DNA of 64,000 nucleotides, from positions 124,001-188,000 of the forward strand of contig NIVC01001630.1 in the NCBI GenBank assembly GCA_002269645.1. The letters are read 5' to 3'. Shown piece after piece: positions 13,147 through 35,004 of the stretch. The stretch's first letter is position 1. Every line of letters begins with the position of its first letter. A program made the translations under genes and the position numbers. This DNA is from Macrostomum lignano (Eukaryota). The notes below the pieces were generated by a model. The model was given only the letters and a program-made list of their open reading frames with translations. It did not search any database and was not told the origin of the DNA.

Positions 13147-13606
13147 ATGCAGGATGGTCAACGAAGACTAAAATTCGCTTTTAAGTTCACGTACTTTCCC
13201 TAACTAGAACAGCTATCGGGAACTGAACTGCGTAAATTTACGGATGTATTTGATTTGCTTTAGTAAATGTACGGTCGTAATTTTCTATCTTAATCAATCA
13301 CCTATAATAATAAACTAATTCTGCAGTTATAGGTCGGAAAAAAATATTCTGTATGAGGATGTTCAACATCGCTTGAGCCCTCTTCTAAGTCTGCAAGTAT
13401 GCCCAGGCGAGCATGCGAAGGGCGAGACAAACAATATTGAGTGCGTGCTGCGCGTCTTCGAACGAACGAGTATGAGCGAACTTAAAGATGGATTTTCAGT
13501 TCGCGTAATCGGCTGTAACTTTCAATTTGATATAGTTAAAAATATGTCAACAGGCTGGTACGAATTTCATTTGGCCAGGACTGCGTTGGGTGTCGCTGAA
13601 TTTTAA
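13147..13606 (+). CDS. Orphan tandem-family gene copy 1 (divergent; exons 13147-13190, 13327-13606)
   Basis: ATG exon ending in phase 2; acceptor TTCTGCAG|T as in the paralogs; exon 2 (GEHAKGETNNIECVLR..YEFHLAR) aligns to the other copies. The stop falls just before the paralogous donor CC|GTAAGT. Confidence 0.55.
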
Positions 13607-14949
13607 TTGCTACCGTAAGTTTTTCTGTAGATTGCTTATAAAGCATACGCATTATTATTTTATTTTGATATCGTTTACCTAAATACTCGTAGTATTGAAA
13701 ATCCATTGGCAGATCCAGATTCTTCCCCTTTGGAGCGAATGCAGGAAGCATTGGGTCCGGATTGTTTCTGATGAGTTTTGAATCTTGGATTGTGTTCACA
13801 TGAGGGCAGATATCGTGGCAGAGGACTTCTAGTTCTTTGATCTTGTTAGAGATTCCGTTTGCATTCCATTGAAGGACTTTGAGTTCGATATCACTAGCCG
13901 GTTGGTATTAACGATGATAGTCCAGTAGGTTGATGTGGAGGCTGCTTGCGCGTGCCAGAATTGCTAGCCGCCTCATTAACGTTTGTATTTTTTTAGCAGG
14001 GTCGGATTTGCGATTTTCAACAAAAAGTTTTCGAATAGGTTTTAGGTAGAATGCTGCATTTGGCTGACACAGCGCTTCTAGGCGCTTTATTTCTAGGCTG
14101 AAATGTCCATGATTTTATATTGAATATGAGTTAAAACGATGAATTGATTTTCTAGTTTCAATACGAGCTATACAAGCGCTTTCTTATAGAACCACCTGGA
14201 TGAAAAACGCTTTATCCCTACCCTTAGCTATCATTTTTTGCTCTAAGGCCTAGACAAAAAACCTGACAAGAAGCAGCCCAACCTACCCCGCAAATTTTGC
14301 TTGAACTTTCTCTTTTGCTTCTTTGATTTAAAAAATCTAACAAGTAATTGTTTAAATAGTAATGATAGGAAGTTAGGAAAACCAAATTAGGTTTACCATT
14401 TTTATTCCTTTGGTTTATTTCCGCAGGGTTCAGCGGCGGTGCCTCCAGCAGCGTCGCCTACTCTACTCCAGCCTATCGATGTTGTCATCCTTCTGACTAA
14501 CGTGAGAGGTTGTTGGTTTCTCACGTCGTAGACGGTTTCTAAGCTGTCCTGCAGCCAGTTGGTCAATAAGTAGTTTAAGTAGTAGTTTTAGACAACTAAG
14601 TAGTTTAATAATTGTCTATCCATTAAGATGCGTTATTTCTCTGTACACCTGACATTATTCCGAGTTTTGCGTAGTTTATGTTGACATAGAAATAAAATTA
14701 GAAGTATTGTCAATATTAGGTAAATCAAATAGAAATATTACGTTCATGTTATTTGAATTAATTCACGCATTAGGGCAGATAGTCAACCAGTTGCTTTTAT
14801 CCTACTAGTCGTAGTTCAGCCATGCGAATTTTTTTACCAATCAAACTGTATTAACACGGTGCAATCAGTTTTTATCTCGTCTTGTTAATCACTACCCTAC
14901 AAAGTGAGAGTCACAGAGAATCTACCGTTAGAGTCAGCCATCCATGCCA

Positions 14950-15038
14950 GCCATGGATTTCAGCAGGTTTTGAGCCCTCCATGGTCAGGAATTTGATCAC
15001 TGCCCTGTACTCAATCTTCAGATCTTGAGAATTGCCAT
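14950..15038 (-). mobile_element. mariner-type transposase N-terminal relic
   Basis: Minus-strand frame reads KIEYRAVIKFLTMEGSKPAEIH, typical of the mariner N-terminal HTH. The ATG at 15038 is out of frame. Confidence 0.6.
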
Positions 15039-15556
15039 AGGTAACTGGAATATTAAGGCGCTATGGAACTTAAGTAATGCTTACAGACCTGAAATTTTTT
15101 TCAAAGACTATTAACGTAGATCATTGTGCTAGAGCATCAATTTTCAGCGCTTTGTGACCATGTGATCTTGGTCGGGCTCAGAACTTTTCGCTACTCGTTG
15201 AATATGTTAGTCACATTAATTTACTGTAACAATTATATTTCATACGTCTAGAATTTTTATTAAAAAATTAAGCGTCACCCTAGTCATTTTTTCAAGCAAA
15301 GAACTTTGATTTTTTATTAATTATTTCTTTTTAAGTACTTCATACAACTTAGTCCAAATAAGTACAACTTTACATAAAATAATTATCCAGCACCAACAAT
15401 TATTGCCATTGCACACTCTCGTAGTTTGCTTCTTTGCAAATATACGCGGCTTAACAATCTTATCAGTCTTCTCAAGGCACTACACCGTTTTTTAAAGAAA
15501 TTAATTTTGTCGCGAGTTTATTTCTAGCTTAAAGTTATTCAGTTGGCTGATTTGAC

Positions 15557-15903
15557 CTGACTCCGGTCTGACTCCGGTCTGACTCCGGTCTGACTCCGGT
15601 CTGACTCCGGTCTGACTCCGGTCTGACTCCGGTCTGACTCCGGTCTGACTCCGGTCTGACTCCGGTCTGACTCCGGTCTGAGTCCGGTCTGACTACGGTC
15701 TGACTCCGGTCTGACTCCGGTCTGACTCCGGTCTGACTCCGGTCTGACTCCGGTCTGACTACGGTCTGACTCCGGTCTGACTCCGGTCTGACTCCAGTCT
15801 GACTCCAGTCTGACTCCAGTCTGACTCCAGTCTGACTCCAGTCTGACTCCAGTCTGACTCCAGTCTGACTCCAGTCTGACTCCAGTCTGACTCCAGTCTG
15901 ACT
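15557..15903. repeat. 11-bp tandem repeat (CTGACTCCGGT / CTGACTCCAGT)n
   Basis: Direct reading. The variant switches from G to A midway. Confidence 0.95.
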
Positions 15904-16805
15904 ATCACGAGATCGAGTTGGATCGCTACTACCGTCGTGTCGCGAAGGGACCCACGAAAGTGTCTGCTAATGTTGACGAAAAACTGTTGTCAGAATCGAT
16001 ACAGTGTGTGAGAGCTCTACAATAGCATTCTCATAACTGCTGTGCATTTTTTTTATAATCTATCATAACTATTTTATCTGTTTGACTAATTGAGTCGATG
16101 TGTATTCTGAAAGTTCATTTGGGATTTGCTGCATTTCACAAAGCAAATAAACTTCGGAATGAATTTTGAACGTCTTTGACTTCTTCTTTATAACCGTTAT
16201 AGAGTTAGCTAATTATTAAACTTCAACTTATGCATGTAACTCTCCAAACTCTTTAGTGATAATTGCTCACAATCCCCAGTTCTTACTCGCTGTCAACTAG
16301 TCTTATCCACTGAGTTTAGGACCTCACCTGTGACCGCACATAGAAGTTCTATATGAATCAGTGCTGAACTTTCGTACATAACGATTAGAGGTTCGCTTCA
16401 CACTCTTCTCTTGCTACTCTTCAGTAGGCGATCTCCTATAAAAGACAAATTGGAAATCGCATTGAAAACTTAGACCCGAATGACGTTTCCTAAGTAGTCA
16501 TACACACCAGTATTCGCCGGTCTCTCAATAATCGTGAGCTACGATGAGAAAATAATTACATATGATAAGAAGTGATTAGTCGCATCGGATATTAGCCAAC
16601 TCTCTAGAGGTTTCCAAGAGGTTGAGAGCCTTAACTTTACATAAAATCTCCCTTTCTTATTTACCCTCACCAATAAAGTGCCTTCGGGTCTGGGGGATTT
16701 CGTCAATGAAGGCGTTAATTCTTTTAAATACGTTGAAGTTCACATCCTCTCAGCTGTTATAAACCGTTAAAACTAATTTCAGCACTGGATACCGGTATAT
16801 CTGCA

Positions 16806-17814
16806 ATGCCAAACGATATCTCCTCACCAGTCTATAACTCGTTGGACCTGTCCGCTGGGAACGTCAAACGGCCAAGGTAAGATTTGCTACGATCTGATAG
16901 CTGTCCAGTCGCCCTGTAATATTACATGTATATGTATGCAGTAAAACTGAAAGATGTTAGGATGTTAAGATACTTTGACTTCAATAACTTTCTGCTTAAA
17001 TATTTACTGTACTCGTATAGTCAGAAATGCGAAAAATTAACTATGCGCCTCGTCCCACAAAATATACTTGTGATTTAGTTAGCATAGAATCATGATTTTC
17101 AACAGTGTCGACAGATGTTGGGCGGCCCGAGGATTCTTATTTAACGCCCACAAAGCATGGCTTCATTATTGGTATTTTAACCTAGGTAGACATTCGTGCT
17201 TAACTACTAAGTTTCTGAAAATTTCATTAGGATGATAGCGAGCAGCATAGATGTGCCTCACTGCACGAATCAAAAAAGAAGTTTTTTTTCAATTTACCTA
17301 CGAATTTTACATAATATTGCTTAAAGTTGGGCAATCAATTTTACTATCTTACATCTTAATATATGCATATGCTAATCCAATAAAATAATTCTGCAGTTTC
17401 GATAAAGTCCTAGAAGCTGATACTTTGCGGCAGCTCGAATGGGTGGGTGTTCCTGGAGCCCATTACTGTGGCAAATTCGATGATATCAAGCCAACTCTAG
17501 AACTTATTAGACTGCCCAACGAACAAAAAGGAATTGATGATGGTATGCCGCTTCGTGAGCAAATCAATAACTGTCTACTAAAGATTGAGAAATGTAACGC
17601 TGGTTACAAAATACACGTAGCCAGGGCGGTCTTTGAAGAAACATTCGGTAATCCGTAAGTTTTACCAGATCTACGTACTACTAGTCATGAATAGTGGTAT
17701 ATTCATTATTTGAATTGCACAGACATTGCCAATATTATTTAAGATTTACTAAATATTTCAAAAATAATATTCCATTGCAGATTGGAGGAGCTACCTTGTG
17801 GCTGCATTATTTAA
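16806..17814 (+). CDS. Orphan tandem-family gene copy 2, intact, 120 aa; exons 16806-16876, 17397-17654, 17781-17814
   Basis: Donors AG|GTAAGA and CC|GTAAGT, acceptors TTCTGCAG and CCATTGCAG, phases 2/2, 363 nt open. Protein: MPNDISSPVYNSLDLSAGNVKRPSFDKVLEAD...FGNPLEELPCGCII*. Confidence 0.75.
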
Positions 17815-18589
17815 ATGGGACACGGACCCGGACAGTTCCTATCCAGTGTACTTTGTTGTTGCTGGTTGTTGTTGAGATCTGAGAGCTTATGACGATGCAC
17901 ATTGCGTGTGTCCGACCCAGTTTCAATCGGAACTCCGGGAGCTCTACCGGAATGTCCTTCCATGGAATTTATTTTTTCATCTTTTTGCAAATTCCTTGGA
18001 ATTGCATTTGTGTTTAAATGTTATTATTCAACAAAAATAAACACAATGCATGCATTTTTGGAATTACTTTTTTCATTGACTCTTTATTTTGGCGGGTATA
18101 GAAAACTGTATGATTTATAACTTTAAGTTTCCAATCTCTAGTGGTAACTTTAGGACTTACATACTTTGAGTTTAATTCAAAAGTTAAGTGGTCTTTATTC
18201 AAAGCTATTAAAGTTAGTATCAGTTGGTATTATCCACTGAGCTGAGGACATCACCTGCAACCACTGACTGGAGTTTTTTTGGCACACACGATGAGAGATT
18301 CGCTTTACACTCTTCTCTCGATACTCTCAATAGGCAAGCTAAAATAAAGTAGCAACTAGAGAAGTTAATATTTGGGAAGTACGAGCTTACTATTAATATT
18401 GCTTTAAAGTGCTAAATCTCCCATTTCAGCAGTCATGGCACCTAGTAACGAATAACCGACGTCACCCGTCACCGAAACAGCGCGTTTTTGGCAACACAGG
18501 TGCTGCAGCCAACATTATTGAGGATTCATAAATCGACTTCATGACTATTTTGAAGGTGGCTCTTCAAGCCTTCTTCAAGTACGCGGTTC

Positions 18590-20570
18590 AGGCGCTCCAC
18601 TCCGGAATTCTTGAGGGTGGTAGAACGGAGTCTGACGATGATGGATGCCATACGCCTTTAGGAAGTCGTTGAACTCCTGGGAGATGAACTGGGGTCCTCC
18701 ATCGGTGGTGATTACGCGCGGAATGCCCCAGCGACAAAACAGCGCTATGAGACTCTTGATGATAGTCGCAGACGTCGCCGAAGAGAGGCAGATCAGTTCG
18801 GGCCACTTTGAATGCAGGTCGTGCACACCGAGGATGAAGCGGCAGTTCTGTGGTGCACCCTCATGCAGCTCTCCGAACAAGTCGATCTGCAGCTCTGTCC
18901 ACGGCTCCTTCGGCCACTTGATCGGGGTCAGCACTGTCTGGTGCGGCTTGAAGCTCTTCTCACTGATGATGCACGCAGAGCAGCTGCTGACGAACCTCTC
19001 GATGTCGCCGTCCATTTTGAGCCACCACTCGGTGTCTCGGCAGTGATGCTTGGTTCTGCTGACTCCCTTGTGACCTTGATGCGCTAAGTCGAGCACTCGC
19101 TGACGCAGTTCTTCCGGTATAACGGCGCGAGCTCCCATGGCCAAGCACCTGCCGTTGCTCCAGACAGTCAGATCGTTCCTTACACTCCAGTAAGGCAGCA
19201 GGCGCTCGTCGAGCTTTTTCTTGTCTGGCCAACCGGAAACTGTGAACTCTGCGACTCGTGCCAGGAGCTCTTCCTTTGAAGTTGCTTCCGCCATTTCGTC
19301 CTCGGTGACCACGGTCAGCGTCCGTCTCGGCCAGGAGCACTCTCTGGACTTCCAGATCGTCAGTTGCATCGCCTTCCGCCGGCTCGGCCGTGACCTAGCA
19401 GCGCACGGCGTTCTTGGCATCCGGGACGTACTTGACGGTGAAGGAGTAATTTAACAAACGATCGTTCGTTCGTTAACCAGCGATCCAGTCTGAGTGGCCT
19501 GTGTCCGCATCCAGATGCTGACAGCAGCGTGGTGAGAGCCTGGTGGTCGATGTGGAGCTCAAACAGTCGGCCGTAGAGGAAGAAGTTCCAGCGCTCGCAG
19601 GCGAAAATGCAGGCTAGGGCTTCCCTCTCGCTTGCGGAGTAGCGGCGCTCCGTAGCACTCAGCGACCGGCTCGCAAAGGCAACCGGGCGCCATTGACCAT
19701 CGGAGTCTTGCTGGAGAAGCATCGCACCGAGAGCTGATGCTGAGCTGTCGCAGTTGACGATGATTGGCTGATCTGGGTCGAAAAACTTGAGGCAAGGTGG
19801 CTTGCACACTCCTGTCTTCAGCTGCTCAAAAGCCTGCTGGCACTCGCTCGTCCACTTCCACGGCTCGTCCTTCCTCAGCAGTTTCATGAGGGGCTCTGCC
19901 GTACTGGGGAGGTTAAAATGAAGTTTCCGAAGTACTTTACGACGCCTAGAAACGCAGCCACTTCCTTGGTGCTCGTTGGCGGCTGTACCTTCTCGATAGC
20001 TTCGACATGTGACTGCAACGGGCGGACTCCAAGCGCTCAGCTCATAGCCTAGGAAGTTGATCTTTTCCTGACGCCAGGTGCACTTGGCCGTATTGATGGT
20101 CACGTTGTGCGTCATAAAAGCTTGCAGCACCTTGTTACAGGCGCTTGTCGTGTTCTTCTCTTGATGCCGCGTGCACTACGATGTCATCAATAAAGTGCAC
20201 TGCGCCTTTGATACCACTGAGGATCTTGGCCATCACCTTCTGGAGCGCAGCCGGTGCAGTACTCAGGCCGAAGCACACCCTCCGATTCCGATATAGGCCT
20301 CACTCCGTCACGAACGTCGTCAGATTTCTGCAGTACTCGGCCAACTCCAGTTGCAGGTAAGACGAATTCAGGTCCAACTTGGAGAAGCATCGTGACCCGG
20401 CAAACTCGGCGGAGAGCTATTCAAAGGTCGGAAGTGGGTATCTGTCCGGTATGATGCTCTTATTTGGGCGTCTCAGGTCGTTGTAGATCCGGATCGAGCC
20501 ATTCGCCTTTGGCACCACAACTAGGTTTGACACCCAATCTGACGCGTCGACCTCCTTAATGATACCTTGC
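18590..20570 (-). mobile_element. Degenerate Ty3/Gypsy pol fragment (RT, RNase H, integrase), no LTRs
   Basis: RT WVSNLVVVPKANGSIR..FIDDIVV; RNase H CDSSASALGA..VAFASRSL; integrase HQGHKG..CSAC, IDLFG, TTDGGPQFISQEF. In-frame stops and frameshifts are present and both ends are truncated. Confidence 0.95.
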
Positions 20571-20571
20571 A

Positions 20572-21566
20572 GAAGAATTCGAGTATCCAGAAGAGTTCGA
20601 GTAAGTGTTCACAGAAGCTGTTCATTTCAAGTCACTAATTGAATCATGATATCACCATTAACTGGTTAAAATCTCGGATATAAAATACTTCTATATATTT
20701 ATATACTTATCACACACACCTTGCAACTCTGACCTCCTGGTAGTAGTAGTATGATATAAGGGGCTGAGTCATCCAAGCGAGCTGGCGCGCAATGCGCCTG
20801 AGCAATAAGGGTGGCGCAGCCCCTTATATCATACTACTACTAACAGTCTCGACAGATGTTGGGCGGCCAGAGGATTCTTAAATTAACGCACACAAAGCAT
20901 GGCTTCATTATTGGTATTTTAACCTAGGTTCATGCTTAACTACTAAGTTTCTGATAATTTCATTAGACCGATAGCTATCAGCATAGATGTGCCTCACTGC
21001 AACAATCAAAAAAAGTTTTTTTCAATTTACCTAAGAATTTTACATAATATTGCTTAAAGTTGGGCAATCAATTTTACTATCTTACATCGTAATATATGGA
21101 TATGCCGATCCAATAAAATAATTCTGCAGCTTCTAGGAAGTCCTACAAGCTGATACTTTGCGGCAGCTCGAATGGCTGGATGTTCCTGGAGCCCATTACT
21201 GTGGAAAATTCGATGATATCAAGCCAATTCTAAAACTGATCAAACTGTCTGAAGAGATAAAAAATGGCATTGATAATGGCATGTCGTTACGTACTCGAAT
21301 CAACAATTTTCAACTTAAAATTGAGAAATGCAACGATCGTTACAAAATCCACGTAGCCAGGGTGCTCGGCGGAGTCAGCTTTGCTAATCCGTAAGTTTTA
21401 CCAGATCTACATACTAGTCATGAATATTCATTATTGGAGTAGCACAGACATTGCCAATAGTATTTAAGATTTAATAAATATTTAAATATTCCTTTTCAGA
21501 TTGACCCAGCTACCGTGTGGTTGCGCCATTAAAACATGCAACCAAGTTTCTGTTAGACAGAAATAA
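20572..21566 (+). pseudogene. Orphan tandem-family copy 3, pseudogene; remnant exon 1 to 20600, exon 2 21130-21390, exon 3 21500-21566
   Basis: The first exon (..EEFEYPEEF) is cut off by the Gypsy fragment. There is an in-frame TAG at the start of exon 2 (C TTC TAG GAA). The rest is close to copy 2. Confidence 0.75.
20741..20842. repeat. 102-bp hairpin / mini-MITE with perfect 26-bp inverted repeats
   Basis: TAGTAGTAGTATGATATAAGGGGCTG (20741-20766) is the exact reverse complement of 20817-20842. Confidence 0.85.
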
Positions 21567-21684
21567 AAAATAACCGATCGAATGGTTAATGTTTTGGAAG
21601 TCCAATTTTTCTTTGAATTATTTTTGGCGCGAATAGAAAGTTTTAAATTATTATAGCTCTAAATTAAGCGCGTATCTTCCTCTC

Positions 21685-21939
21685 CAGGGGCGTCCCCATC
21701 CATTATGGTAGGGGGCCACAAAGCCAAGCATTCCACATGACTAAATTTCAATATTGTTTTAAGGAATCGGTGTTGTTAACACTCATTATAGCGCCGCAGG
21801 CACTCATTTTTGCGCCACATTCAGGCACGAATTTTGGCGTTCTGAAGCAAATTTACTGATTACCATATCGGGTCACAAAGTGGGGCGGAGGAACAAATCA
21901 TTATCATGCCCCATAGCTTTTGCAGGAGCGACGCCCCTG
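21685..21939. mobile_element. hAT-like MITE (255 bp)
   Basis: TIR CAGGGGCGTC...GACGCCCCTG. Degenerate 8-bp flanks TTCCTCTC / TCAATCTC. Absent at paralogous positions (~16240, ~24600). Confidence 0.55.
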
Positions 21940-24900
21940 TCAATCTCCAAACTGTTTAGTGGTAAAAATGATTATGCATATTTTAAGTTCTATTCAAAAG
22001 TTTAGTGGTCTGGTTAATCAAAGTTACTAAATTCACTATCAATTTCTATAAGAAACATGAACCACTTAGTGTGGTAAAACCTGGATTTTGAATTCCTCAA
22101 AGTCCTCAGTTCTTACTCGCTGTCAACTGGTATTATCCGCTGAGCTGTTTTTTGTACACACGATAAGAGATTCGCTTCACTCTCTTCTCTTGGTACTCTC
22201 AGTAGGCAGCTATAATAAAGTATAAATTAGAGGATCGTTCGTGTTTGGGAAGTGCAAGCATACCAATTAATTCGAAATACGAAATCTCCCATTTCAGCGG
22301 TCATGTCACCTACTCACGAATGATTGACGTCACTCTGTCGCCGACACATCGAGTTTGCGACATCACAGACGCTGCAAGTCTGCAACCTGTAATTGAAGTT
22401 AATTTGGCGATATATAAGTCTTGCGTTCTAGACACACAATGCAGTAGTGCATTTTAAGTGAATTATTTTTAATATTTTTTATCGCATTCGTTGAGTATGG
22501 ATTTTCAGCACGAAATGAGCCACTTTCCTGTACTATACATACTACTGCCAGTAGCCATGGAAGTTTATTCTACCATTTTCTTCCCTGCCTTCCCCATTTT
22601 TTCCTTCCCTCTCCCCCATCTCTTTTTATCCTTTGTCTACCCCTAGTCTACGGTAGCAAAATAAAGAGCATACATACCAGTCATGAATATCCGTTGTTTG
22701 AGTTGTTACCAACTATTACCAACTATTATACAAATATACAAATATTACCAGCAATAGGAATGTAATCCAATATACTAAAATGGTTAGTAAGTGTCTGTGG
22801 TTACAGGAGGGATAGCATATTGCCTAAGCTGTTAGAGTATAATACAGTTAGTGTGTGATAGATACACGTAGCAACATAGCGAGCCAATTGATAAGATAAG
22901 ATATGCGGCATGATAAATCAACCTTTGCATAATTTACTATCCTTTGCAGATGACGACAAGGTGGCGCCGTCATCCGGTCATACCTTTAACTGGAACTTTC
23001 ATTAAAAAGGCAGGTGGTCAAAGTTACTAAAGTTACTAGCAGTTACTGTACTATTAGATACGTGAACTCCTAAGTGTATCCAAATCTCAAAAATTCCTCA
23101 CAATCAAAAAATCTTATAAAATAGAAATTGGAAATCGCATAGAAAAATCCGGGTCCGGATGAGGTTTATTAAGTAGTCCTATGCATGCACACCAGTATTT
23201 GCCGGCCTCCCACTAATGGTGAAGCAGCATGAGAAGCTAATTGGGAATTAAGACAAGAGCAATAAATTTGAAGTGCAAAATTTCCCATTTCAGAAAACAA
23301 GTCACCTACTGTGGTCACGAATGGCCGACGTCACTCTGTCACGATCGACACTGTGCGTGCTCGACATCACAGGCGATGCAAGCAGCATTGAAGTAGAGAG
23401 GATACAGACTTCTGGGTCACCGGGCGAGCCACCATCCACCTATTGGGCTCTCCGGCCAAGGAACCACCCCTGCGGACACCGGCACTTGCGGATTTCCCTG
23501 CGCGACACCGCAGCACCAGGTTAGCGAAAGTGGCGGCAACGCCTCCTCGCTGCATCCGGATGCCCGGATCCCCTGAAGCTGAGTCAAGTAAGTCAATGCC
23601 ATTGATGCATTCAATCCTACTTGCGACAACCAGATTGAGACCTCCAGCTATGACAGCCCCATCTATGAAGCTCTCAACGCAAGGTAGTCTTTGCTTTCAA
23701 GGCCGCTTGAAGATCCAACTCTTACAGTAATGGACCTCGGCGTGCGATCAGACGGGAGGCAGATGGCGTCTTGCACCCTTGTCAATGCGATACGGCAACG
23801 CAATCTGACTTACTCGAAATGTGAAAATCTAACTTTATTCAGCGAATAGCACAATAAGTCAAGCAGACAAAATTATCAGCTGAATTTAAACTTCAATTAA
23901 TTTTTATTATTTACTTAGACTTAACAGAATCGCGATTTGTATAAGAGCTCAGCTCAAATATCAGGAATTCCATTGGGTATTACTCCTATATGTTAACTCT
24001 GCTTTTATCCCTGACGCTTTTCACAGGAACAATGCCAACTGCATGAATCTGCGCCGTCCAGATTTCTTCAAGACGAAGATGACCGTGAGTTTCTAATGCA
24101 AGGCCTGCGCGAGGGATTTTGCCTGATCACCGAAACTCGTTCCGCCAATCCGATGTCGAGAATTATGTATGGCTCATGCAAGCTGCATGAACGAGAGCAA
24201 GGTCGAGAAGCAGATCTACTGCTACCGTCGCGCCGCAAAGAGACCCACGAAAGTGTCTGTCAGTGTAGAAACATTTGACGAAAAACTGTAAGAGTTGTAA
24301 GAATCGATCCACTTTTCAGATAAAAATAGTTACAATACAGCTGTGCTGGGTGAGAGATCTTAGTACGATGACATGCTCGAAACTTCTGTGCATTTAGTTA
24401 GAATAGTAAAGCCTCGCTATTTCATCTGGGAGACAATGTGTACAGTATTTTGGAACTACATTCAGGCTTTGCTGATTTTTACAAAGCAAATAAACTGCAG
24501 AATGAATTTTGGAACGTCTTTGACTTCTTCTTTTCGGCGGATATAGCTCGTAGATAGAGTTAGCTAATTATTAAACTTTAACTTACGCGTGTGACTCTCC
24601 AAACTCTTTAGTGATAATTGCTCACAATCCTCAGCTCTTACTCGCTGTCAACTAGTCTTATATGCACTGAGTTTAGGACCTCACCTGTGACCACACACAA
24701 GTTCTAATTTGACTATCGGTGTAGAACTTTTCGTACACACGATTAGAGATTCGCTTCACTCTTGCTACTCTTCAGTAGGCGATTTCCTAAGATAGAAATC
24801 GGAAGTCGCATTGAAAAACTCGGTCCTTAATGAAGTTTCCTATGTATAGTTCTATGCATGCACACCAGTATTAGCCGGCCTCTCAATCGCTAATGGTGAA

Positions 24901-25208
24901 CCAGGGGGAGAAACTAATTAGATATGAAAAGAAATAAATAGTGGCATCCTATTGTCGCCAACTCTATAGGTCACCGCTTCCATTTAAGAGCCTTAAGTTT
25001 ACATAAAATCCCCTTTTCTCATTTATCCCCACCAAAATAGCCCCTAGGGACTGTGGGATTTCGTCAATGAAGGCGTTTCTTTTTTCTTTAGAAGAGAATT
25101 TTTCGCGTTGGTTCTATTTTTACTTGTTGCTTATAAAATGCTTTGGAGTTCACTTCCTCTCCTGATATGAGCAGTTAAAACTAATTTCAGCACTGCCGCA
25201 TAACAGCA

Positions 25209-26194
25209 ATGCCAAATGATACCTCCTCGCCAGTGTACAACTGGTTGGAATTGTACTATGGGAACGTCCAACAACCAAGGTAAGATTTTCTATGACCTGA
25301 TGGCTATCCAGTCGCCCTAGAATTACATGTATATTTATGCAGTAAAACTGAAAGATGTTAAGATGTTAAGATACTTTGACCTCGATAACATTCTACTTAA
25401 TTATCTATAGTCAGAAATGAGAAAATTACCGATGCGCCTCGTCCCACAAAACATATTTGTGGTTTAGTTAGCATAGAATCAGAGTAAAGATTTTCAATAG
25501 TCTCGACAGACGTTGGGCGGCCCGAGGATTTTTAATTAACGCCCACGAAGCATGGTTTTATTATTGGTATTTTACCATAGGCATTCATGCTTAACTACTA
25601 AGTTTCTGATAATTTCATTATGTCGATCGCGATCAGCATAGATGTGTCACACACTGCACCAATCAAAAATAACGTTTTTTTCAATTAAACTACTAAGAAT
25701 TTTATATAAGATTGCTTAAAATTTGCCAATCAATTTTACTATCTTACATCTTAATACATGGATATGCCGATCCAATAAATATTTCTGCAGCTTCGAGGAA
25801 GTCCTGGCTTCTGATACTGAGCGTAAGCTGAAACGGCAGGATTGTCCTGGAGCCCATTACTGTGGCAAATTAAATGATATCACGCAACTTCTAAACGTTA
25901 TTGGTCTGCCGAACGAAAAAATTGGCTATGGTAGGCCACTACGGTTGCTAACAAACGATTTTCAACTGACCATTAAAAAGATTGCTGATGGGTATGAAAT
26001 CCACCTTGCTAAGGCCGTATATGGCCGAACGTTTTCAGAATGGTAAGTTTTACTGGAGCTACATTACTAGTCTAATAAATATTTATTATTTGAATTGCAC
26101 AGATATTGCCAATAGTATTTAAGATGTACTAAATATAAAAAAAATAATATTCCATTTCAGATCGGTCACGCTTCCTTGCGGTTGCGCTATGTAG
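25209..26194 (+). CDS. Orphan tandem-family gene copy 4; exons 25209-25279, 25791-26042, 26161-26194
   Basis: Same exon structure as copy 2: MPNDTSSPVYNWLELYYGNVQQPSFEEVLASD...YGRTFSE. The junction TG|A forms TGA after 107 aa; the in-frame tail is SVTLPCGCAM*. Confidence 0.7.
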
Positions 26195-28385
26195 ATTGAC
26201 TCGTACCCGGACAGTTCCTGTTGAGATCTGAGAGCTAATGACGATGCACATTGCGTGTGTCTGACCCAGTTTCGATCGGATCTCCGGGAGCTCTACCGGA
26301 ATGTCTTCCATGGAATTTATTTATCCATCTTTTTGCACATTCCATGGAAATGCATTGCATTCGTGTTGTTGCTGTATTCTACAGAAATAAACACAAATAA
26401 TTTTTTGAAAGAATTATTTTTCGTTGACTCTTCATTTTGGCGGGTATAGAAAATTGTTTGATTTATAACTTTAATCTCTTTCCAATCTCTGAAGTGGTAA
26501 CTATGAAAATAGGACTATCAATAGGACTTACATACTTACTTTTGATTTAAAAGTTTAGCGGTCTTTAGTCGAAGCTACTAAAGTTAGTGTCAGCTGGTCT
26601 TATCCACTGAGCTGAGGACCTCACTAACTACCTATGCAGAAATTGTGGAGATTCCCTTCACACTCTTCTCTCGCTACTCTCAGTAGGCAAGCTAAAATAA
26701 TTAGAAACTAAGGAAATTAATTTTTGGGAAGTACGAGCTTACTATAAATATTGTTTTAAAGTGCGTAATCTCCCATTTTCAGCGTTCGTCACCCATGCAG
26801 TCACGAGTCACGAATGACCGACGTCACTCCGTCACCGAAACAGTGCGTTTTCGACAACACAGGCGCTGTAACCAACTTGATGACTGTTTTGGAGACATAA
26901 AGCTTCCGTTTTAAACACACAATGCAACAGTGCATTTTAAGTGCATTAATTCTTTTATGATTTCTTATCGCAATTCAATGAGGACTGAATTTCGAGCCCC
27001 TTTCCCTCTACTGTACATACTACTGCCAGTAGCGATGGCATTTTCTTCCACCATTTTCTTCCCATTTCTTCCCCATTTTTCCGTTGTCTACGGTAGCAAA
27101 ACAAATAGCATATACATACTATTCATGAATATCTGTTGTTTGAGTTGCACAAATATTGCCAACAATAATAATGTAAATAAGATTGTCTAAATATTGAACG
27201 GTAATTATTTCATTGTACTGACAGCATATTGCCCAATCTACATATGCTTTGCTGTTAGAGTAGAATTCCCCATTTTGCCGATTTCATACTGCATCAAATG
27301 TCTTACACTTGCTTTTGCTGGACCTCTTTTTCTTCAGCTGTGCTTAGTTTATTTATTTATTCTTTATTATCTTTTATCTTTAAGCTTCCGGATGGTCAGC
27401 AGAGCTGACTATGTACCAACAGCCTTTACTGCTGGTAATCTTTTAGAGTCTATGGTAAAAGAAAAGTTATGTGCTGCACAGTAGCCGTTCCTGCCGAGCA
27501 TGGTCAGCAGCGCTGATCATACGAAAAATGGGTGAAAAAAGTCCTACATATCTGCAATGGAATGCAGCGACTCGGTTTCAGTATTCTCTGTGATGACATC
27601 ATCAGTCTCAGAATTTCCATGCAAAATTTCTATGGTTGTAGCTGATTTACTTTTCAATAAACTGATATAACTGATATACTCTTATTAAGGAGGTGCAGTG
27701 CTTTCTCTTTCAAAAATGCCTGTTTGCAGAATTTAAAGTGAACTGTAGTGTCTATTGCTAGATATCGAGTGTACGCACTGCATAATCTATTCAGAGAGCA
27801 TTAAGTGAAATGTACATTTTGAGACTGCTTTTTTCGACCCTAGATTTGTCCAAGCCAAGTATAAATGCTCCATTCTCGGCTAGAAAGGCTTTGCACAGCG
27901 GCGCATTAAGATTCTAGCTATAGTCTATGGTCAGCTCAGCTGGAACGGAGCTTTTGCATTTCTAGCTCCGGCGCGAAAAGGATCCTTCAGTATGCTTAAC
28001 TCATGTCATTCACTCACTCATTTTTTTTCTCCCATTGCCTTTATTCGTCCCTATTTAAAAATACCGTTTTTAATTAACTACTGTGGAATTGAGTAAATCA
28101 AAATATTCAGTATGTGACAAGGGCCCTCCTTCGCCCTTGCCGCCTCTTTGCCTTCCTTTCTTGGCGTCGTTTGCTAAAGATCGAAAATTTTAATGCCAGA
28201 AGTCACGAGAGTCGGCTTTGGGCCGCTTTTAAGCATATGCAAAACACTTAGCAAACTAGATGCATTAAATTTATTGCGTATTGTATAATTTTGCCTCAAT
28301 TAATAGATATTTATTTTCGTTTCCAACTATTCTACATTCCCAGCTTTTATCAAAAAATAATAAAAGCTGGCTGATTGGCTGAATT

Positions 28386-29929
28386 ATGTATCCAGACGAG
28401 TTCGAGTATCCAGACGAGTTCGAGTATCCAGAAGAGTTCGAGTATCCAGAAGAGTTCGAGTATCCAGAAGAGTTCGAGTATCCAGAAGAGTTCGAGTAAG
28501 TGTTCACATAAGCTGTCATTTCAAGTCACTAATTATATCCCCATTAACTAGCTGATAACTAGCTATCAGCATAGATGTGTCACACTGCACCAATCAAAAA
28601 TGAAGTTTTTTTTTTCAATTAAACTACTACGAAGTTTATATAAGATTGTCACGTTATTTGATGTTGGCCGTGACCCTTAAAAGGGCCGTTTTAGTCCCAA
28701 AATAAGTTGAAGTCAACTTAGGCGAAGTGGATGGTGTAGCGGAGCACTTGGCGATAAAGGCAGGAACTGCCGTAGTTGTCTTTATTGTTAATATCAGTAT
28801 TAAGTTTGGTTGTTACTGGCAATAAACAGACTATAGCTTTCTGGGCACTGGCGGCTGCAACAATGGGTTCTTTTAAGATAAATTGGATGTGAGTTCAAGC
28901 GACAGACGAGTGAGGTAATGGCGACGTAACGTGATGATCAATGGCAATGAGTACAGAAGAGGCAGTGAGACGTAGTAGGCAGATGAGCAGTGGCGAAGTT
29001 GGCGTCAGTCGTGGCGTGACGCAAGGAGGCTCGAGGCAGCCAGACAGAGAGAAGGAAAACAAGGCCGTAAAAACACACACAAGGCCAAGGACAGGCCGGG
29101 AGGAAGAGAGAAGCACAGATAAGGAGTGCCCGCCGCCAGGCGGGGGTTTAATAAAGGAGCGCAGAGGGGGGGTAGCGCGAAGCACGAGTGATTTCATTGG
29201 CTGGCGAGAGAACTTAAAATTATCAATCGTGCCAATTTTATACGGTCGCGAGAGAGGATAGCAAAATATACAGTGAATTAGAAATTGCCACAAAATCGTT
29301 GGCCATTACTACAAGTAAACGTCGCAATAAACGAATGGAAAAGTTTAGTTGAAACGGTGAAACTGAAGGGTTGAATGACTATGGAGAACAGCAGTCCAAC
29401 GGCCCTTTTCGGGACCACCTTAAACTGACAACGTCACAAGATTGCTTAAAATTTGCCAATCAATTTTACTATCTTACATCTTAATACATGGATATGCCGA
29501 TCCAATTAAATATTTCTGCAGCTTCGAGGAAGTCCTGGCTTATGATACTGAGCGTGAGCTGAAACAGCTGGATGATATTGGAGACCATTACTGTGGCAAA
29601 TTAAATGATATCACGCAACTTCTAAACACTATTGGTCTGCCGAACGAAAAAAATGGCATTGATAAACTTGTGCCACTACGGTTGCTAACAAAGAATTTTC
29701 AACTGAACAATAAAAATATTGATGATGGGTATGAAATCCACCTGGCTAGGGCCGTATATGGCCTAACGTTTTCAGACTGGTAAGTTTTACTGGATCTAAA
29801 TTACTAGTCTAATGAATATTTATTATTTGAATTGCACAGATATTGCCAATAGTATTTAAGATGTACTAAATATAAAAAATAATATTCCATTTCAGATCGG
29901 TCACGCTTCCTTGCGGTTGTGCCATGTAG
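28386..29929 (+). CDS. Orphan tandem-family gene copy 5 with a (YPE/DEFE)x6 first exon; exons 28386-28495, 29522-29779, 29896-29929
   Basis: ATG plus six 18-bp units ending GA|GTAAGT (phase 2), spliced to C TTC GAG GAA. Exons 2-3 are close to copy 4, including the TG|A junction. Confidence 0.7.
28647..29438. mobile_element. Solo LTR (792 bp) in intron 1 of gene copy 5
   Basis: TG...CA ends (TGTCACG...CGTCACA) and a 4-bp TSD AGAT (28643-46, 29439-42). The empty site ATAAGATTGC is seen in the paralog at ~25706-25715. Confidence 0.85.
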
Positions 29930-32173
29930 ATTGACTCGGACCCGGACAGTTCCTGTTGAGATCTGAGAGCTTATGACGATACACATTGTGTGTGTCCGAC
30001 CCAGATTCGATCGGATCTCCAGGAACTGTACCGGGGTCAAATAAACGTCAAGTCAATGAATTTTTGGAACGTTTATTTTTCTTTGACTTCTTTTTGGCGT
30101 GCATAGAAAGTGTTATTAAGTTAACTTTAACTCTCTTTCCAATATCTGTAGTGGCAACTAGGACTAAAATATTTTAAGTTTGATTGAAAATTTTAGTGGT
30201 ATTTAGTCAAAGTTACTAAAGTTACTTAAGTTTCTATTAGAAACATGAACCACTTAGTGTGTCCAAACCTGCAGTTGGAATTCCTCAAAGTCCTCAGTTC
30301 TTACTCACTGTCAACTGGTCTTATTTGCTAAGCTTTGGACTTCACCTGCAACCACCAACTACTGGTGCAGAGTTTTTTGTACACACGATAAGAGATTTGC
30401 TTCACACTCTTCTCTCGCTACCCTCAGTGGGCAAGCTGAGACTAGACTAAAGTAGAAACTAGAGCAAAAATATTTTTGAAGTGCGAAATCTACTATTTCA
30501 GAGGCTAAGTCACCAATAGTCACGAATGACTGACGTCACTTCGTCGCTCAGAACGGACACTGAGGATTCGTGAATCTTCTACTACATGACTATTTTGGAG
30601 ATATAAGGCCTCCGTTCTAGACACACAATGCAACAGTGCATTTTAATGCATTCATTTAAATGCTTCTTTATTGCATTTCACGAGTACTGACTTTCAGCAC
30701 GAGATGAGCCCCTTCCCCTGTACTATACATACTACTGCCAGTAGCAATTGCATTTTCTTCCACCTCTGTCTTTCCCATTTTTTCTTCCCTCTCTTCTCAT
30801 ATTTTATCTACCCTAGTCTACGGTAGCAAAATAAAGAGTATACACACTAGTCATGAATATCCATTGTTTGCGTGGCATAAACATTACCAACAATAGGAAT
30901 GTAAATAAGATTGTCTAAATATTCAACGACAATATTCTATTTTGCCGTTACAGTATAATACAGATAGAGTGTGATAGATATCGAGATAGCGAGATAATTG
31001 ATATTAGATAAGATCTGTGACATGAAAATGTAAATCATCCTTCGCATCATTTACTTATCCTTCTCGGAAATCGCATTGAAGAACTGATCTGAGGCTTGAA
31101 TGAAGTTTTCTAAGTAGTGCTATGCATGCACACTAGTATTTGCTGGCCTCTCATAATGCTGAAGCAGGATGAGACACTATATTTAGGAATTAAGAGCGAT
31201 TAATTTGAAGTGCGAAATTTCCCATTTCAGAAATCAAGTCACCTATAGTCACGAATGGCCGACGTCGCTCCATCACAGGACGCACTGGGCTTGACATCAC
31301 AGGCTTTGCAACTTCTGTATTGAAGTAGAGAATTCAGACTTCCTGGTCATCTGGTCTGACGTGTGACTACAAAATCATCTTCAATGAGGAATGCAGTTCC
31401 TGTTCATTCCCCACTAAGACTCGCGAATATCCCCTTTGACATTTTATTGGTACAGACCACTAGACAAACTGTGAGTCCAATCCAATCTTACAAGCGTATT
31501 TACTTATTCAATCAATCGGATCCCAAGCGTCAAAATAAAGAAAAGGAAACCCAACTTAGCACCAGTAACATCACCAAAGCATTAAACTTTCCAACTGGAC
31601 TCACCTGCCTACCGGGCCAACTTGAAACTAAGATGAGATTCACGCTAACAGAGTGCCATGAGGCCGAAATCCCAAATCGTCGAACGCCTACTTATTGTCC
31701 ACAAACAAAAATATATAACTAGAAATGGATTGGATGGATGCTAATTTTTACTGAATAGAAATTAAGATTTCATTTAAACATCTCGTCATCATGAATTGAT
31801 ATTTTTGAGCAGTGAAAGTACATCGCTGTTTATGAACATGCTACAGAATTTTTTTTCTATTTTTTGTAGCAGACTTTTGTCTGAAAGAATTGATCAATTG
31901 GCTCTCTATGTTCACTCGGTACTCTTTGATTGTTTTGATAGTTTTTGTAATATTTGCGTTAGCTTTCTGGTCACAATTTAGCAACGACATTCAAGCTTTC
32001 AAATGCATTCATTGATCAGATTTGTCTTTTGTCCCTTTTGTTTTGTTTCGGTATGTTCCACCTTTCCTTTGCGCCCACAAATTGGATTTTTTTTCTATTT
32101 TAACAATCTGCAACACCCTCCTCTTTTACATTTGGATGTAAGGTTAACAGCAACCTTGGTTGACCGGGTTGCT

Positions 32174-32402
32174 TTCATAAGCTCGAAATTTCACAACCTC
32201 GAAATTTCACAACCTCGAAAACCATTCTAGCAGCCACTTTCACAAACCCGAAATTGCACAACCTCGAAAATGTACTGTCTATCTTAGTGTCTTAGTGTCT
32301 TAGTTTCTGTCTGCCTGTCTGTCTGTCTGTCTGTCTGTCTATCTGTTTGTCTGTCTGAGCTTAACCCACAGTTTCGAGGATATAAAATTTCGAGCTTGTG
32401 AA
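32174..32402. mobile_element. Small MITE-like inverted-repeat element with internal (CTGT)n
   Basis: TTCATAAGCTCGAAATTT versus rc TTCACAAGCTCGAAATTT. No TSD resolved. Confidence 0.45.
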
Positions 32403-33322
32403 GTCGGCTGAAGTCCCAATGTTCAGGATAGTCGGCAGCAATGTCACAGTATCAGGAGCTTCTACGGATGTACTTTTGCGTACTTTCTCGCAAATGTACT
32501 TTTGCGGATGAACTCTGCCGTGCATTTGGCGTGCAACCTCAAACACCCTGGGTCGCTAGTTTAGCATATGAGGGCTTGGCCACTCTGTCACACTACAAGC
32601 TATCCTTCTCAACTGAGGCGAATGGTTCTATTAAATTGAGGCCGGGCGACTGTACATATCGGTGCCAGGACCCGAAACCGGCGCCAGCATAGCGCGCGCG
32701 ACGAATTACAGTATTATAGAGCAGACAATTTTTTGTTCCTCATATTGCCTTTTGTAACAAAATAGAACTTTTAAATATGCTTCCATCATTTTAATGACCG
32801 GTTCTTTGTCCTCTCAATCTCAATCCTCTTAAGAAGTGTCTTGTATCATAATCGCAATTTTATTGCTTGAGAATGAAATTAGCTCTTCTATTTTTCATAT
32901 AATTTCATTCAGCTCCAGTTACGAGCGTACCTAGGATAGATACCAGTATATCAAATTGTCTGGGTACAGGGAGCCAAAATCATCTTTTTATTTTAGACCC
33001 CATTTCCCAGCCGCTGTCTCTCGATCGCCCCAACATCCATGCCGCCTCTCGGTCTCTAAACCTCTGACTTTCTGTGCAGTCTCGCGCCCCTGTCTCAATG
33101 TAATCTCTTCCTCTGTGCTCTAGCAACAAAAACTGAGAACAGTTCTTCAATTTAATGTGCTTTGCGTTGCTCTTACGGTGAATCAAAAATGTAGTTCTTT
33201 TGTCAATAAGCATATTTATATGATCAGGATTCTGGAAATTTCTGACTTATTCACTCAACAGCTAAAGTGAAGAGTTGCGTAGCTACTCTGGGGTAACGAA
33301 AGCTTCGGGGAGGGGCCGGTCC

Positions 33323-33978
33323 GGTCTACTCCCGATTGGCCGCATTCTCGATTGCCCGAATCTCGATTGTCCAAATCCCGACTGGCCGAATCATGACTGG
33401 CCGAATCATGACTGACCGAATCATGACTGGCCGAATCCCGACTGGCCGAATCATGACTGGCCGAATCCCGACTGGCCGAATCCCGACTGGACGAATCCCG
33501 ACTGGCCGAATCCCGATTGACCGAATCCCGACTGGCCGAATCTCGATTGTCCAAATCCCGACTGGCCGAATCATGACTGGCCGAATCCCGACTGGCCGAA
33601 TCATGACTGGCCGAATCCCGACTGGCCGAATCCCGACTGACCGAATCATGACTGGCCGAATCCCGACTGACCGAATCATGACTGGCCGAATCCTGACTGG
33701 CCGAATTCCGATTCGTCGATTTCATACTGAATCAAATCCCTTAGACTTGCTAGTGCTGGGCCGCTCTTTCTTCAGCTTTGCTAAGTTCCTTTTTACTAAT
33801 TTACTAATTATTATTCTTTATATCCTTCACTATGCTTCACTCATGTCGCCTAGTTGGGGAGGGGGGCAGTTGAGCTATGCATTGTTATTTGCGTTATGCA
33901 TGTATTCGCATCGATAGCAAGCAACAACCAAGTATCAGGCATTCGATGCAGTATGAATTCGGCGAATCGGGAGTAGAC
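33323..33978. mobile_element. Non-autonomous TIR element with an internal 15-bp minisatellite (TCCCGACTGGCCGAA)n
   Basis: TIR GTCTACTCCCGATT...AATCGGGAGTAGAC. Degenerate 9-bp flanks GGCCGGTCC / GGCTGGCCC. Array at ~33335-33715. Confidence 0.6.
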
Positions 33979-34481
33979 GGCTGGCCCTCTTCGCTGTGCT
34001 TTCTCTCTACTCTTTCTCGCGGAGGGTGGGCGCTTGAGCCGCCCCACCATCCCTTTAGGGGGATTTTTGTGCCGCGCTGGGCTGCTCAGGCCCGGCTGCC
34101 CTGTCTCGCCCTTGCACGCTCATTTTTTCTCCCTTTGCCTCTATTCGTCCTTGTATTTAATCACCGTTTTCAATTACTGTCTTTTTGAGTGCATTAAAAT
34201 AAATTCGGTTTGTCACAGGAGCCCTTCTTTGCCCTTGCCGCGCCTTCGCCTTCCTTTCTTGGCGTCGTTCGCTAATGAAAAAGTTTAGTCCCAAAACCAC
34301 GAGAGTCAGCTCCAAGCCCGCTTTGAAGCACATGCAAAAACACTCGACAAACTAGATGCATTAAATGTATTGCGTATTGTAATTTTGCCTCAATGAATAG
34401 ATATTTAGATATTTAGACATATAGATAATTTATTTAGATTTCCAACTATTCTACTTTTCCAGCTAGATATCTGGCTGAACA

Positions 34482-35004
34482 ATGCACCAGGAAGAGAACA
34501 ATTATCAAGAGGAGTACAAGTACGTGTTCACGTAAGCTGTCCTTTTCAAGACACTTATTGTAACTTAGCACTTATTTATTATATCGACATTCATTGGCTA
34601 ACATCTTGCATATAAACTGTGGCACTTATTTCTTGCACAGCTGTTTAAAACTTTCCTTAGTGCTGTATAATGTCGCCAGATTAATTAAAGAACTATTAAT
34701 GTATTTTAACTGCCTAATTATTTAGGTAATGATGAAATTAAATTTCAGGCTTAAAGAAAATCTGGAACAACTGTTATGGCGTTCATCATCAATTGAAGAA
34801 CAACATAGTGACGTAGGCGCCCGTTATTTGATCAAAAATGCCGATATCAACATGGTCCTCTGCGTACTTAACTCTATGGACGACAAGGCTGCACGCAGTC
34901 GGCTTGAATCCGGCTTGTCGTTGTCCACTGAGGGCGATAAATTTAAACTTATGACCAAAAAACCGAAAGTAAGAATAGTGAACATAAGAATATTTATGAG
35001 ATAA
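34482..35004 (+). CDS. Orphan tandem-family gene copy 6 (divergent; exons 34482-34519, 34749-35004)
   Basis: MHQEENNYQEEY exon, phase-2 donor GTACGT, acceptor AATTTCAG|G. Exon 2 GARYLIKNADINMVL.. is distantly similar to GAHYCGKFDDIKPTL. The upstream region is homologous to that of copy 5. Confidence 0.5.

Follow-up and report, generated by a model that had tools for sequence, protein, structure and literature searches.

A tandem array of small three-exon orphan genes in Macrostomum lignano with coding exons more divergent than introns

What kind of gene is repeated six times within 22 kb of the genome of Macrostomum lignano, and why are its coding exons less alike than the introns that separate them? 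The stretch of DNA analyzed, called the window below, comprises 64,000 nucleotides of contig NIVC01001630.1 in assembly GCA_002269645.1 and corresponds by coordinate arithmetic to contig positions of about 124001 to 188000. Between its positions 13147 and 35004, it contains six paralogous copies of a small gene. A first-pass annotation, made from the letters of the sequence, had described them as a hidden tandem array of orphan genes; the observation was confirmed, and the reading attached to it was partly supported overall. Gene structure, orphan status, and exon-biased divergence of the family can be stated with confidence. The array probably represents a lineage-restricted, three-exon, protein-coding family with intracellular products, which is arranged in tandem and evolves under diversifying selection while its non-coding DNA is homogenized.

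Six copies and their gene models

The copies were recognized by their second exon, which codes for nearly the whole protein. The six exon-2 starts predicted in the first pass, 13327, 17397, 21130, 25791, 29522, and 34749, were exact: each is located directly 3′ of a (t)tctgcag or atttcag acceptor. All copies are on the forward strand, and in all six the family reading frame has to borrow two bases from the upstream exon, which means that a phase-2 intron precedes exon 2, again as predicted. A profile hidden Markov model was built from copies 2 to 5 plus P0003, one of the public protein models numbered P0001 to P0007 here, and run against all 1882 six-frame open reading frames (ORFs) of the window. 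It matched copies 2 to 5 with E values of 1e-44 to 1e-48 and copy 1 with 3.8e-5. Copy 6 followed with 0.05, or 0.014 when copy 1 was included in the profile, and was the best match beyond the other copies; no seventh copy appeared among these ORFs. Copies 1 and 6 are thus very divergent, as had been noted. Directly downstream of the copy 6 match, in another frame (34977-35036), the peptide “NIYEIKIVRTVLGAIF” is collinear with “dgYeiHlAravlgvtF” of the family. This second-frame match indicates that copy 6 is a true relative that was probably frameshifted near an A-run at about 34960-34975. The frameshift adjoins this A-run and may therefore be an assembly error.

A full unit is about 2.5 kb long within a period of 3.7 to 5 kb. 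It is composed of a TATA box, an exon 1 of 71 nucleotides (nt), a phase-2 intron of about 515 nt, an exon 2 of about 255 nt, a second phase-2 intron of about 120 nt, an exon 3 of 11 codons, and a poly(A) signal. This full set is present in copies 2 and 4 alone, the only two copies for which exon-1 homologues exist in the window. Their units (16005-18513 and 24347-26876) could be aligned over 2.65 kb with 76% identity, and in both a TATAAA is positioned 45 to 75 nt 5′ of the ATG. Of this unit, copies 3 and 5 share only the stretch that runs from the 3′ part of intron 1 through exons 2 and 3, with intron 2 between them, into the downstream flank. The common phase-2 donor /gtaagt of copies 2 to 5 and their short exon 3, now measured as 34 nt, had been seen correctly in the first pass (the slash marks the exon-intron border). 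An AATAAA follows the stop codon by 60 to 220 nt in copies 2, 4, 5, and 6. The features of the array are as follows.

13147..13190, forward strand: putative exon 1 of copy 1, MQDGQRRLKFAFKF, donor AC/gtactt, phase 2, placed by frame and phase only
13327..13606, forward strand: exon 2 of copy 1, open, divergent; 107-amino-acid (aa) model without C-terminal tail
16758..16763, forward strand: TATAAA of copy 2, about 45 nt upstream of the ATG
16806..16876, forward strand: exon 1 of copy 2, MPNDISSPVYNSLDLSAGNVKRP plus AG, donor AAG/gtaaga
17397..17654, forward strand: exon 2 of copy 2, core domain, donor CC/gtaagt, phase 2
17781..17814, forward strand: exon 3 of copy 2, in frame, (P)LEELPCGCII and stop; AATAAA at 18036
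21130..21390, forward strand: exon 2 of copy 3, TAG as second full codon (21134-21136); no exon 1
21500..21566, forward strand: exon 3 homologue of copy 3, LTQLPCGCAI, then read-through KTCNQVSVRQK and stop, usual stop lost
25132..25137, forward strand: TATAAA of copy 4, about 75 nt upstream of the ATG
25209..25279, forward strand: exon 1 of copy 4, MPNDTSSPVYNWLELYYGNVQQP plus AG, identical to P0001
25791..26042, forward strand: exon 2 of copy 4, donor TG/gtaagt; 107-aa protein, tail-less
26161..26194, forward strand: exon 3 homologue of copy 4, would read SVTLPCGCAM and stop; AATAAA at 26386
29522..29779, forward strand: exon 2 of copy 5, open ORF, 92% identical to copy 4 over 0.6 kb, junction TGA
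29896..29929, forward strand: exon 3 homologue of copy 5, SVTLPCGCAM and stop, two synonymous differences from copy 4; AATAAA at 30040
34482..34519, forward strand: exon 1 of copy 6, MHQEENNYQEEY plus AA, donor AA/gtacgt, identical to PAA65659.1
34749..35004, forward strand: exon 2 of copy 6, most divergent copy; AATAAA at 35067

The copies differ in completeness. Copy 2 yields the 120-aa protein expected from the first pass, which ends with PLEELPCGCII, and it is the sole copy of the window that keeps the Cys-Gly-Cys tail encoded by exon 3. Stop codons cut off this tail in two different ways. A TAA three codons before the conserved CC/gtaagt donor leaves the copy 1 protein without it. In copies 4 and 5, the donor TG/gtaagt and the first exon-3 base, A, form a TGA, so that the proteins end at the junction and SVTLPCGCAM is not in frame via the homologous donor; exon 3 of copy 4 can be read in frame only if an internal, non-homologous donor is used, as in P0001. 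The putative exon 1 of copy 1 has no homology to other exon 1 sequences, and this copy has neither a TATA box nor a public model. Copy 3 is a pseudogene, as judged before, with its early TAG and without exon 1. The earlier description of copies 2, 4, and 5 as intact was upheld for copies 2 and 4 as complete units and was too generous for copy 5, which possesses neither an exon 1 nor a start codon. The model for copy 6 comprises 97 aa and equals the NCBI model.

Two ways of rescuing such copies were considered and rejected. The spliced leader of M. lignano ends in ATG (PMC8629364), so that trans-splicing could have supplied copies 3 and 5 with a start; when joined to the exon-2 acceptor, this ATG would set the wrong frame and run into a stop after 8 codons. 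For the junction TGA of copies 4 and 5, read-through as selenocysteine was dismissed because no selenocysteine insertion sequence was found, either in the window at the gathering score or between 24300 and 26900 at E values up to 1.

Divergence of coding and non-coding segments

When the units of copies 2 and 4 were compared segment by segment, divergence was 20.5% upstream, 19.7% in exon 1, 12.6% in intron 1 (63/501), 33.9% in exon 2 (86/254), 14.7% in intron 2, 33.3% in exon 3, and 15.3% downstream. Exons 2 and 3 exceed all other segments of the unit in divergence (p = 1.5e-12 against the introns). The same order was found for copies 2 and 3 (p = 0.002), 3 and 5 (p = 9e-9), and 4 and 5, and in every pair compared exons 2 and 3 diverge 2- to 3-fold faster than the introns. 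Among the four-fold sites in codons with a conserved amino acid, 14/22 differ between copies 2 and 4 compared to 13% in the introns (p = 1e-7): the exon excess extends past replacement sites. The introns of copies 2 to 5 are nearly equidistant (8 to 16%, with 1.5% for copies 4 and 5), and two deeply separated exon types are seen, one in copies 2/3 and the other in copies 4/5. Intron 1 is 87 to 90% identical among copies 2 (16877-17396), 3 (20842-21129), and 4 (25280-25790), the exons being far less conserved. This likeness is attributed to gene conversion; a regulatory role may contribute.

The pattern of exon changes is opposite in the old pairs and the youngest pair. In the old pairs, the proportion of nonsynonymous differences (pN) is smaller than that of synonymous differences (pS), as in copies 1 and 4 (46/54 vs 90/189, p = 4e-7) and copies 2 and 4 (p = 0.03), and the ORFs of copies 1, 2, 4, and 5 stayed open despite saturated synonymous sites. 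Therefore, the sequence is most likely translated and constrained. The youngest pair, copies 4 and 5, has 3 substitutions at 197 flanking intron sites and 26 at 254 exon-2 sites (p = 1.4e-4). Its coding differences comprise 25 nonsynonymous and 2 synonymous changes, giving a nonsynonymous-to-synonymous rate ratio (omega) of 3.96. They are distributed 6/16/5 over the three codon positions (p = 0.016) with 1/29 four-fold sites changed, and nonsynonymous sites tested against synonymous plus intron sites gave p = 5e-6. Comparison with the other paralogues placed derived changes on both lineages. Sequencing error is unlikely because UniProt models carry both exon sequences exactly. The family thus evolves rapidly, as had been claimed.

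Mosaics that suggest an exchange of segments were found in two paralogues from other loci. P0003 is copy-4-like up to column 27 of the alignment and copy-3-like thereafter; P0004 has a copy-4-type N-terminal and a copy-3-type C-terminal part with the switch at column 48/49. Since the non-coding DNA is far more alike than the synonymous sites and mosaic paralogues exist, gene conversion should act beside diversification. This qualifies the birth-and-death evolution proposed in the first pass. Two complete units, two copies truncated at the 5′ end, one of which also has a stop codon, a frameshifted copy, and a divergent copy without tail agree with it; gene conversion, or concerted evolution, has to be added alongside.

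The predicted protein and its public records

The product is predicted to be a soluble protein of 107 to 122 aa without signal peptide or membrane segment. No hydrophobic N terminus or transmembrane segment was found by the Kyte-Doolittle scale (maximum 15-residue mean of at most 1.29), and exon 1 encodes a hydrophilic peptide, the 9-residue hydropathy of which peaks at no more than 0.5. The proteins contain two to five cysteine residues, which are not conserved as a scaffold. What is conserved are L29, G44, I54, L58, the PGAHYCGK motif, and Y-x-I-H-x-A-R. A reading of GAHYCGK as a Walker A motif was rejected: GK is followed by F or L instead of S or T, the motif is lost in copies 1 and 6, and it was modeled as a strand. 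Pfam-A gave no match for full models at E values up to 10 or for exon-2 peptides up to 1, so that the absence of a recognizable domain and of a signal peptide, both noted in the first pass, held up. A PDB sequence search with the family profile returned only a chance match to ribosomal protein L35 (E = 0.8).

Relatives beyond M. lignano were not found in 5.8 billion proteins by two word-seeded searches with single-sequence and profile queries, nor in a full HMMER pass through 1.84 billion cluster representatives; other Macrostomum species are not visibly included in these databases. The family was thus lineage-specific within this scope, as had been proposed: the seven public members are all from M. 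lignano. An armadillo-repeat protein of 1633 aa, which came up in the HMMER pass with E = 3e-4, was judged spurious since the match depends on a repeated “DGAHAVIEA” stretch.

Two AlphaFold2 models had confidence values, given as predicted local distance difference test (pLDDT), of 53 and 65. The latter, made with a nine-sequence family alignment, reached 73 to 85 at residues 41 to 100. The core was modeled with moderate confidence as a compact arrangement of a long helix followed by beta-alpha-alpha-beta-beta-beta. The Foldseek comparison suggested in the first pass was run against PDB and BFVD and gave nothing significant; the best E values were 0.057 (pLDDT 53 model), 0.27 (pLDDT 65 model), and 0.09. 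Proteins of the Roadblock/LC7-LAMTOR-longin type headed both lists and resemble the family in their size of about 100 aa and a mixed alpha/beta topology. Membership would have required a Foldseek E value below 1e-3 together with a template modeling (TM) score above 0.5, or a Pfam Robl_LC7 match. With E of at least 0.057, TM of at most 0.43, a root mean square deviation of 7 to 10 Å, and no Robl_LC7 match at E values up to 10, the assignment was rejected, and this fold is a lead instead of a membership.

The tail LPCGC(A/I)(I/M), encoded by the eleven-codon exon 3, is present in copy 2, P0003, and P0004. Two cysteine residues within the last five positions suggest, as a lead, lipidation or a metal- or redox-related chemistry. 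In common with C-terminally lipidated proteins, such as those with CaaX boxes, Rab proteins with CXC or CC ends, or dually palmitoylated proteins, the family has these two cysteines and hydrophobic last residues; moreover, the tail has its own micro-exon, and LPCGC is conserved between otherwise divergent paralogues. The family differs from lipidated proteins in the position of its cysteines, −5 and −3 instead of −4 or the terminus, and in having no GTPase fold. A CaaX prenylation box was rejected because PCGCII, PCGCAI, and PCGCAM have glycine at −4 with cysteine at −5 and −3, and Rab-type CXC/CC geranylgeranylation because two residues follow CGC and no Ras/Rab Pfam match exists.

The family records are UniRef A0A1I8GW93, A0A1I8JIP3, A0A1I8JGH6, A0A1I8JI04, A0A1I8I0D1, and A0A1I8H404 and NCBI PAA65659.1. 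Four of the seven proteins come from the array, mostly mis-spliced, and three (P0002 to P0004) are UniProt paralogues from other loci. P0001, P0005 (a fragment), and P0007 carry the exact exon-2 sequences of copies 4, 5, and 2, respectively, the copy 4 model being 100% identical to the UniRef protein P0001. The copy 6 model is identical to PAA65659.1, “hypothetical protein BOX15_Mlig013240g1,” located on NIVC01001630.1. The exon 1-2 junction of copy 4 is also present in P0001 and that of copy 6 in P0006, and P0001 to P0003 begin at the same Met as the predicted exon 1. P0001, P0002, and P0005 enter the exon-3 frame via three different internal donors, and in P0007 exon 3 is translated out of its proper frame; these splicing patterns are taken as gene-predictor artefacts.

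“Hidden,” as the array had been called, is correct only in part: the NCBI annotation of NIVC01001630.1 calls copy 6 alone within 10 kb up- or downstream of it, a range in which copies 4 and 5 are also located, but UniProt holds models for copies 2, 4, and 5, and NCBI holds that for copy 6. The array is also not invisible to an unspliced ORF track, since exon-2 ORFs of 77 to 113 aa are found in the plain ORF list. The UniRef names Peptidase A1, CCG, Glutaredoxin, TGF_BETA_2, Guanylate cyclase, and Envelope-like were rejected as mutually contradictory for near-identical proteins and without Pfam support. Six unrelated automatic names on near-identical proteins point to a systematic naming error in the proteome of M. 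lignano. The identifier Mlig013240 had no match in the literature or supplementary tables searched. The family is thus already in the databases in a garbled form, yet it appears to be undescribed.

Surroundings of the array and the explanations weighed

The spacers and flanks contain the following features.

18578..20175, reverse strand: Ty3/gypsy-type pol fragment with reverse transcriptase-RNase H and integrase domains, broken frames, truncated
24554..24933, forward strand: repA, a repeat of about 380 bp upstream of copy 4; the copy 2 equivalent is at 16199-16571
10765-10943, 22091-23242, 30262-31179, and 35120-35499: further repA copies, whole or split
28649..29437, no strand assigned: unique insertion of 789 bp that splits the intron-1 remnant of copy 5, sequence single in the window
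4576-5262, forward strand: ORF with BIR domain, E 2e-4
5319-6140, forward strand: ORF with BIR domain, E 6e-7
6802-7404, forward strand: ORF with C3HC4 RING finger, E 9e-7

The gypsy fragment is located between copies 2 and 3 at the expected site of the promoter and exon 1 of copy 3, and it is an insertion and no part of the repeat unit. Neither of the two overlapping ORFs of the 789-bp insertion (106 and 132 aa, on opposite strands) has a Pfam match. The repA sequence is positioned about 230 to 650 bp upstream of exon 1 in the two complete units and occurs again after copy 6; in other spacers it is split. Its core (…CTCTTCTCTCGCTACTCTCAGTAGGC…) is common to a second element downstream of copies 2 to 5. 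A 29-bp tandem unit, CGACAATATGACTGCGGCAATTTGACTGC, is present at 11683-11806 and as its reverse complement at 12879-12947, about 1 kb apart and just upstream of copy 1; this inverted pair could be the terminal-inverted-repeat-like ends of a non-autonomous element. Upstream of the array, the BIR and RING ORFs form an IAP-like gene (4576-7404, forward strand), interleaved with minisatellites of 19-, 22/44-, and 31-bp units. A 23-bp satellite, TTTGACATGGTGGCTCTTTAATG, occurs on both flanks of the array in opposite orientation (1-2350 and 36766-39352). Minisatellite or satellite DNA makes up more than half of the window, for example, 232 copies of another 23-mer at 40613-45875 and a 20-mer at 59564-62999.

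If the array is a protein-coding family under diversifying selection, unequal crossing-over would make, truncate, and delete copies, and gene conversion would preserve the likeness of promoters, introns, and flanks. Homogenization would bypass the coding exons, which would gather amino acid changes, and exon-2 segments would be swapped between paralogues. This would give rise to a small set of proteins that combine a conserved scaffold of hydrophobic and glycine residues with variable surfaces. The product may, on weak grounds, be an intracellular binding protein in a reproductive, anti-parasite, or anti-selfish-element conflict, with isoforms that bear the tail tethered to a membrane by cysteine lipidation and tail-less isoforms being soluble.

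Several points weigh against this reading or parts of it. The conflict and the lipid anchor are a proposal that goes beyond the direct evidence, and the tail matches neither the canonical CaaX box nor a CXC motif at the terminus. Confidence in the structure model is only moderate, and no significant match to it was found. Splice junctions are predictions save for those of copy 6 (NCBI model) and the exon 1-2 junction of copy 4 (UniProt model). The omega value above 1 comes from one pair of 84 codons, one member of which, copy 5, has no start codon, and a binomial test confined to the exon gave p = 0.036. The older pairs suggest that conversion may have homogenized the introns, which would make them an unsafe neutral yardstick. 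P0003 and P0004 are gene models from another assembly, P0004 with an odd insertion, and may be chimeras of assembly or modeling.

Could the array be a decaying relic instead, in which one or two once-useful genes were duplicated and all copies now drift as pseudogenes with a fast evolution due to relaxed constraint? The stop codon and missing exon 1 of copy 3, the missing exon 1 of copy 5, the frameshift in copy 6, and the loss of the tail in copies 1, 4, and 5 would fit, as would the single copy called by NCBI and the satellite-rich surroundings. Neutral decay cannot, however, yield exons diverging 2- to 3-fold faster than adjacent introns or explain 25 nonsynonymous vs 2 synonymous changes. 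It also conflicts with pN below pS in old pairs, with ORFs of 85 codons that are open after synonymous saturation, and with the retention of TATA box, ATG, splice sites, and poly(A) signal in copies 2 and 4, so that decay is an unlikely explanation. A slightly smaller chance is given to an extracellular arms race of secreted, venom-like or seminal-fluid-like effectors, the true signal-peptide exon of which was missed. It draws on the accelerated exons and segment exchange known from the genes for snake three-finger toxins and phospholipase A2 (PLA2) (PMC2474615, PMC2711939, PMC6062510) and on the rapid evolution of reproduction-related genes in Macrostomum (PMC7336406). Both complete units have a TATA box 45 to 75 nt before the exon-1 ATG, and their Met is shared with P0001 to P0003, which makes a missed exon unlikely. 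The exon-1 peptide is hydrophilic, and a disulfide-rich scaffold does not exist.

Both introns and the 3′ flank are conserved far better than the exons, and better even than the four-fold sites, which may alternatively mean that a small RNA or a regulatory element in introns or flanks is the selected product and the exons a poorly constrained carrier, as in host genes of small nucleolar RNAs. This is very improbable: no Rfam match at the gathering score was found anywhere in the window, a permissive scan of the copy 4 unit gave only a chance match (E = 0.84), no tRNA was found, and the fold of intron 1 is not unusual (z = −1.18). Furthermore, the old pairs are constrained at the protein level and the young pair has an excess of nonsynonymous changes, both of which are characteristic of translated sequence. 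The lowest probability falls to the repeat unit being a transposon, or part of one, which spread by transposition. The repA repeat beside the units, the gypsy fragment in one spacer, and the inverted 29-bp repeats upstream of copy 1 would agree with such an origin; all copies are nevertheless head-to-tail on one strand within 22 kb, and no terminal repeats bound individual units. Among 141 ORFs of at least 55 aa (8.2-36.7 kb) scanned with Pfam, transposon domains occurred only in the single gypsy fragment, and the other matches were minisatellite translation artefacts. Within the window, the copies are strictly tandem, and the unit gave no sign of being part of a known transposon.

A further reading assumes a germline diversification cassette, in which the truncated copies 3 and 5 would persist because they supply exon-2 segments that gene conversion carries into the expressed units 2 and 4, and not because they act as genes themselves. 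Complete units with promoters would alternate with copies without promoter and exon 1, a logic like that of the 5′-truncated pseudo-V donors of chicken immunoglobulin or of antigenic-variation archives, and what is diversified would be a recognition protein inside the cell, in part tethered to membranes. This analogy would explain the mosaics, the homogenized non-coding DNA with diverse exons, and the nonsynonymous bias in a copy without a start codon; it is quite improbable all the same.

Of known systems, the snake three-finger toxin and PLA2 multigene families, with similar introns and switched exon segments (“ASSET”), are among the closest to the diversified family preferred here. In both, small genes with three exons and two introns are clustered in tandem, similar introns adjoin strikingly different exon segments, segments are exchanged, and recent pairs have a nonsynonymous excess, which in the array concerns only copies 4 and 5. 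The array differs in having no signal peptide, no disulfide scaffold, and no similarity in sequence or fold, and its host is a free-living flatworm without a venom apparatus. From Macrostomum itself, the Mlig-sperm1 family (PMC5816591), the rapidly evolving reproduction-related genes mentioned above, and turnover by gene presence and absence (PMC10092323) have been described. The array resembles these genes in being restricted to Macrostomum, without a recognizable domain, present in multiple copies, and fast evolving; it differs from them in that no link to these published genes was found.

In kind, the array is ordinary, an orphan tandem family, with an exon-focused diversification that is clear and somewhat unusual. 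For the annotation of M. lignano, it presents a problem since the same genes are wrongly named and mis-spliced in UniProt and mostly missing from the NCBI annotation of the contig. The practical value is modest unless data on expression and phenotype assign a role to the family. The case is unusual in that a venom-like signature, with exons older and more varied than introns, segment exchange, and omega above 1, is seen in a protein without a secretion signal, an observation that points towards an arms race within the cell. Lineage-specific biology, for example of reproduction, immunity, or genetic conflict, is often encoded by orphan families of this kind, arranged in tandem and under diversifying selection. 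M. lignano is a transgenic model amenable to RNA interference, and such a family would be testable in this organism.

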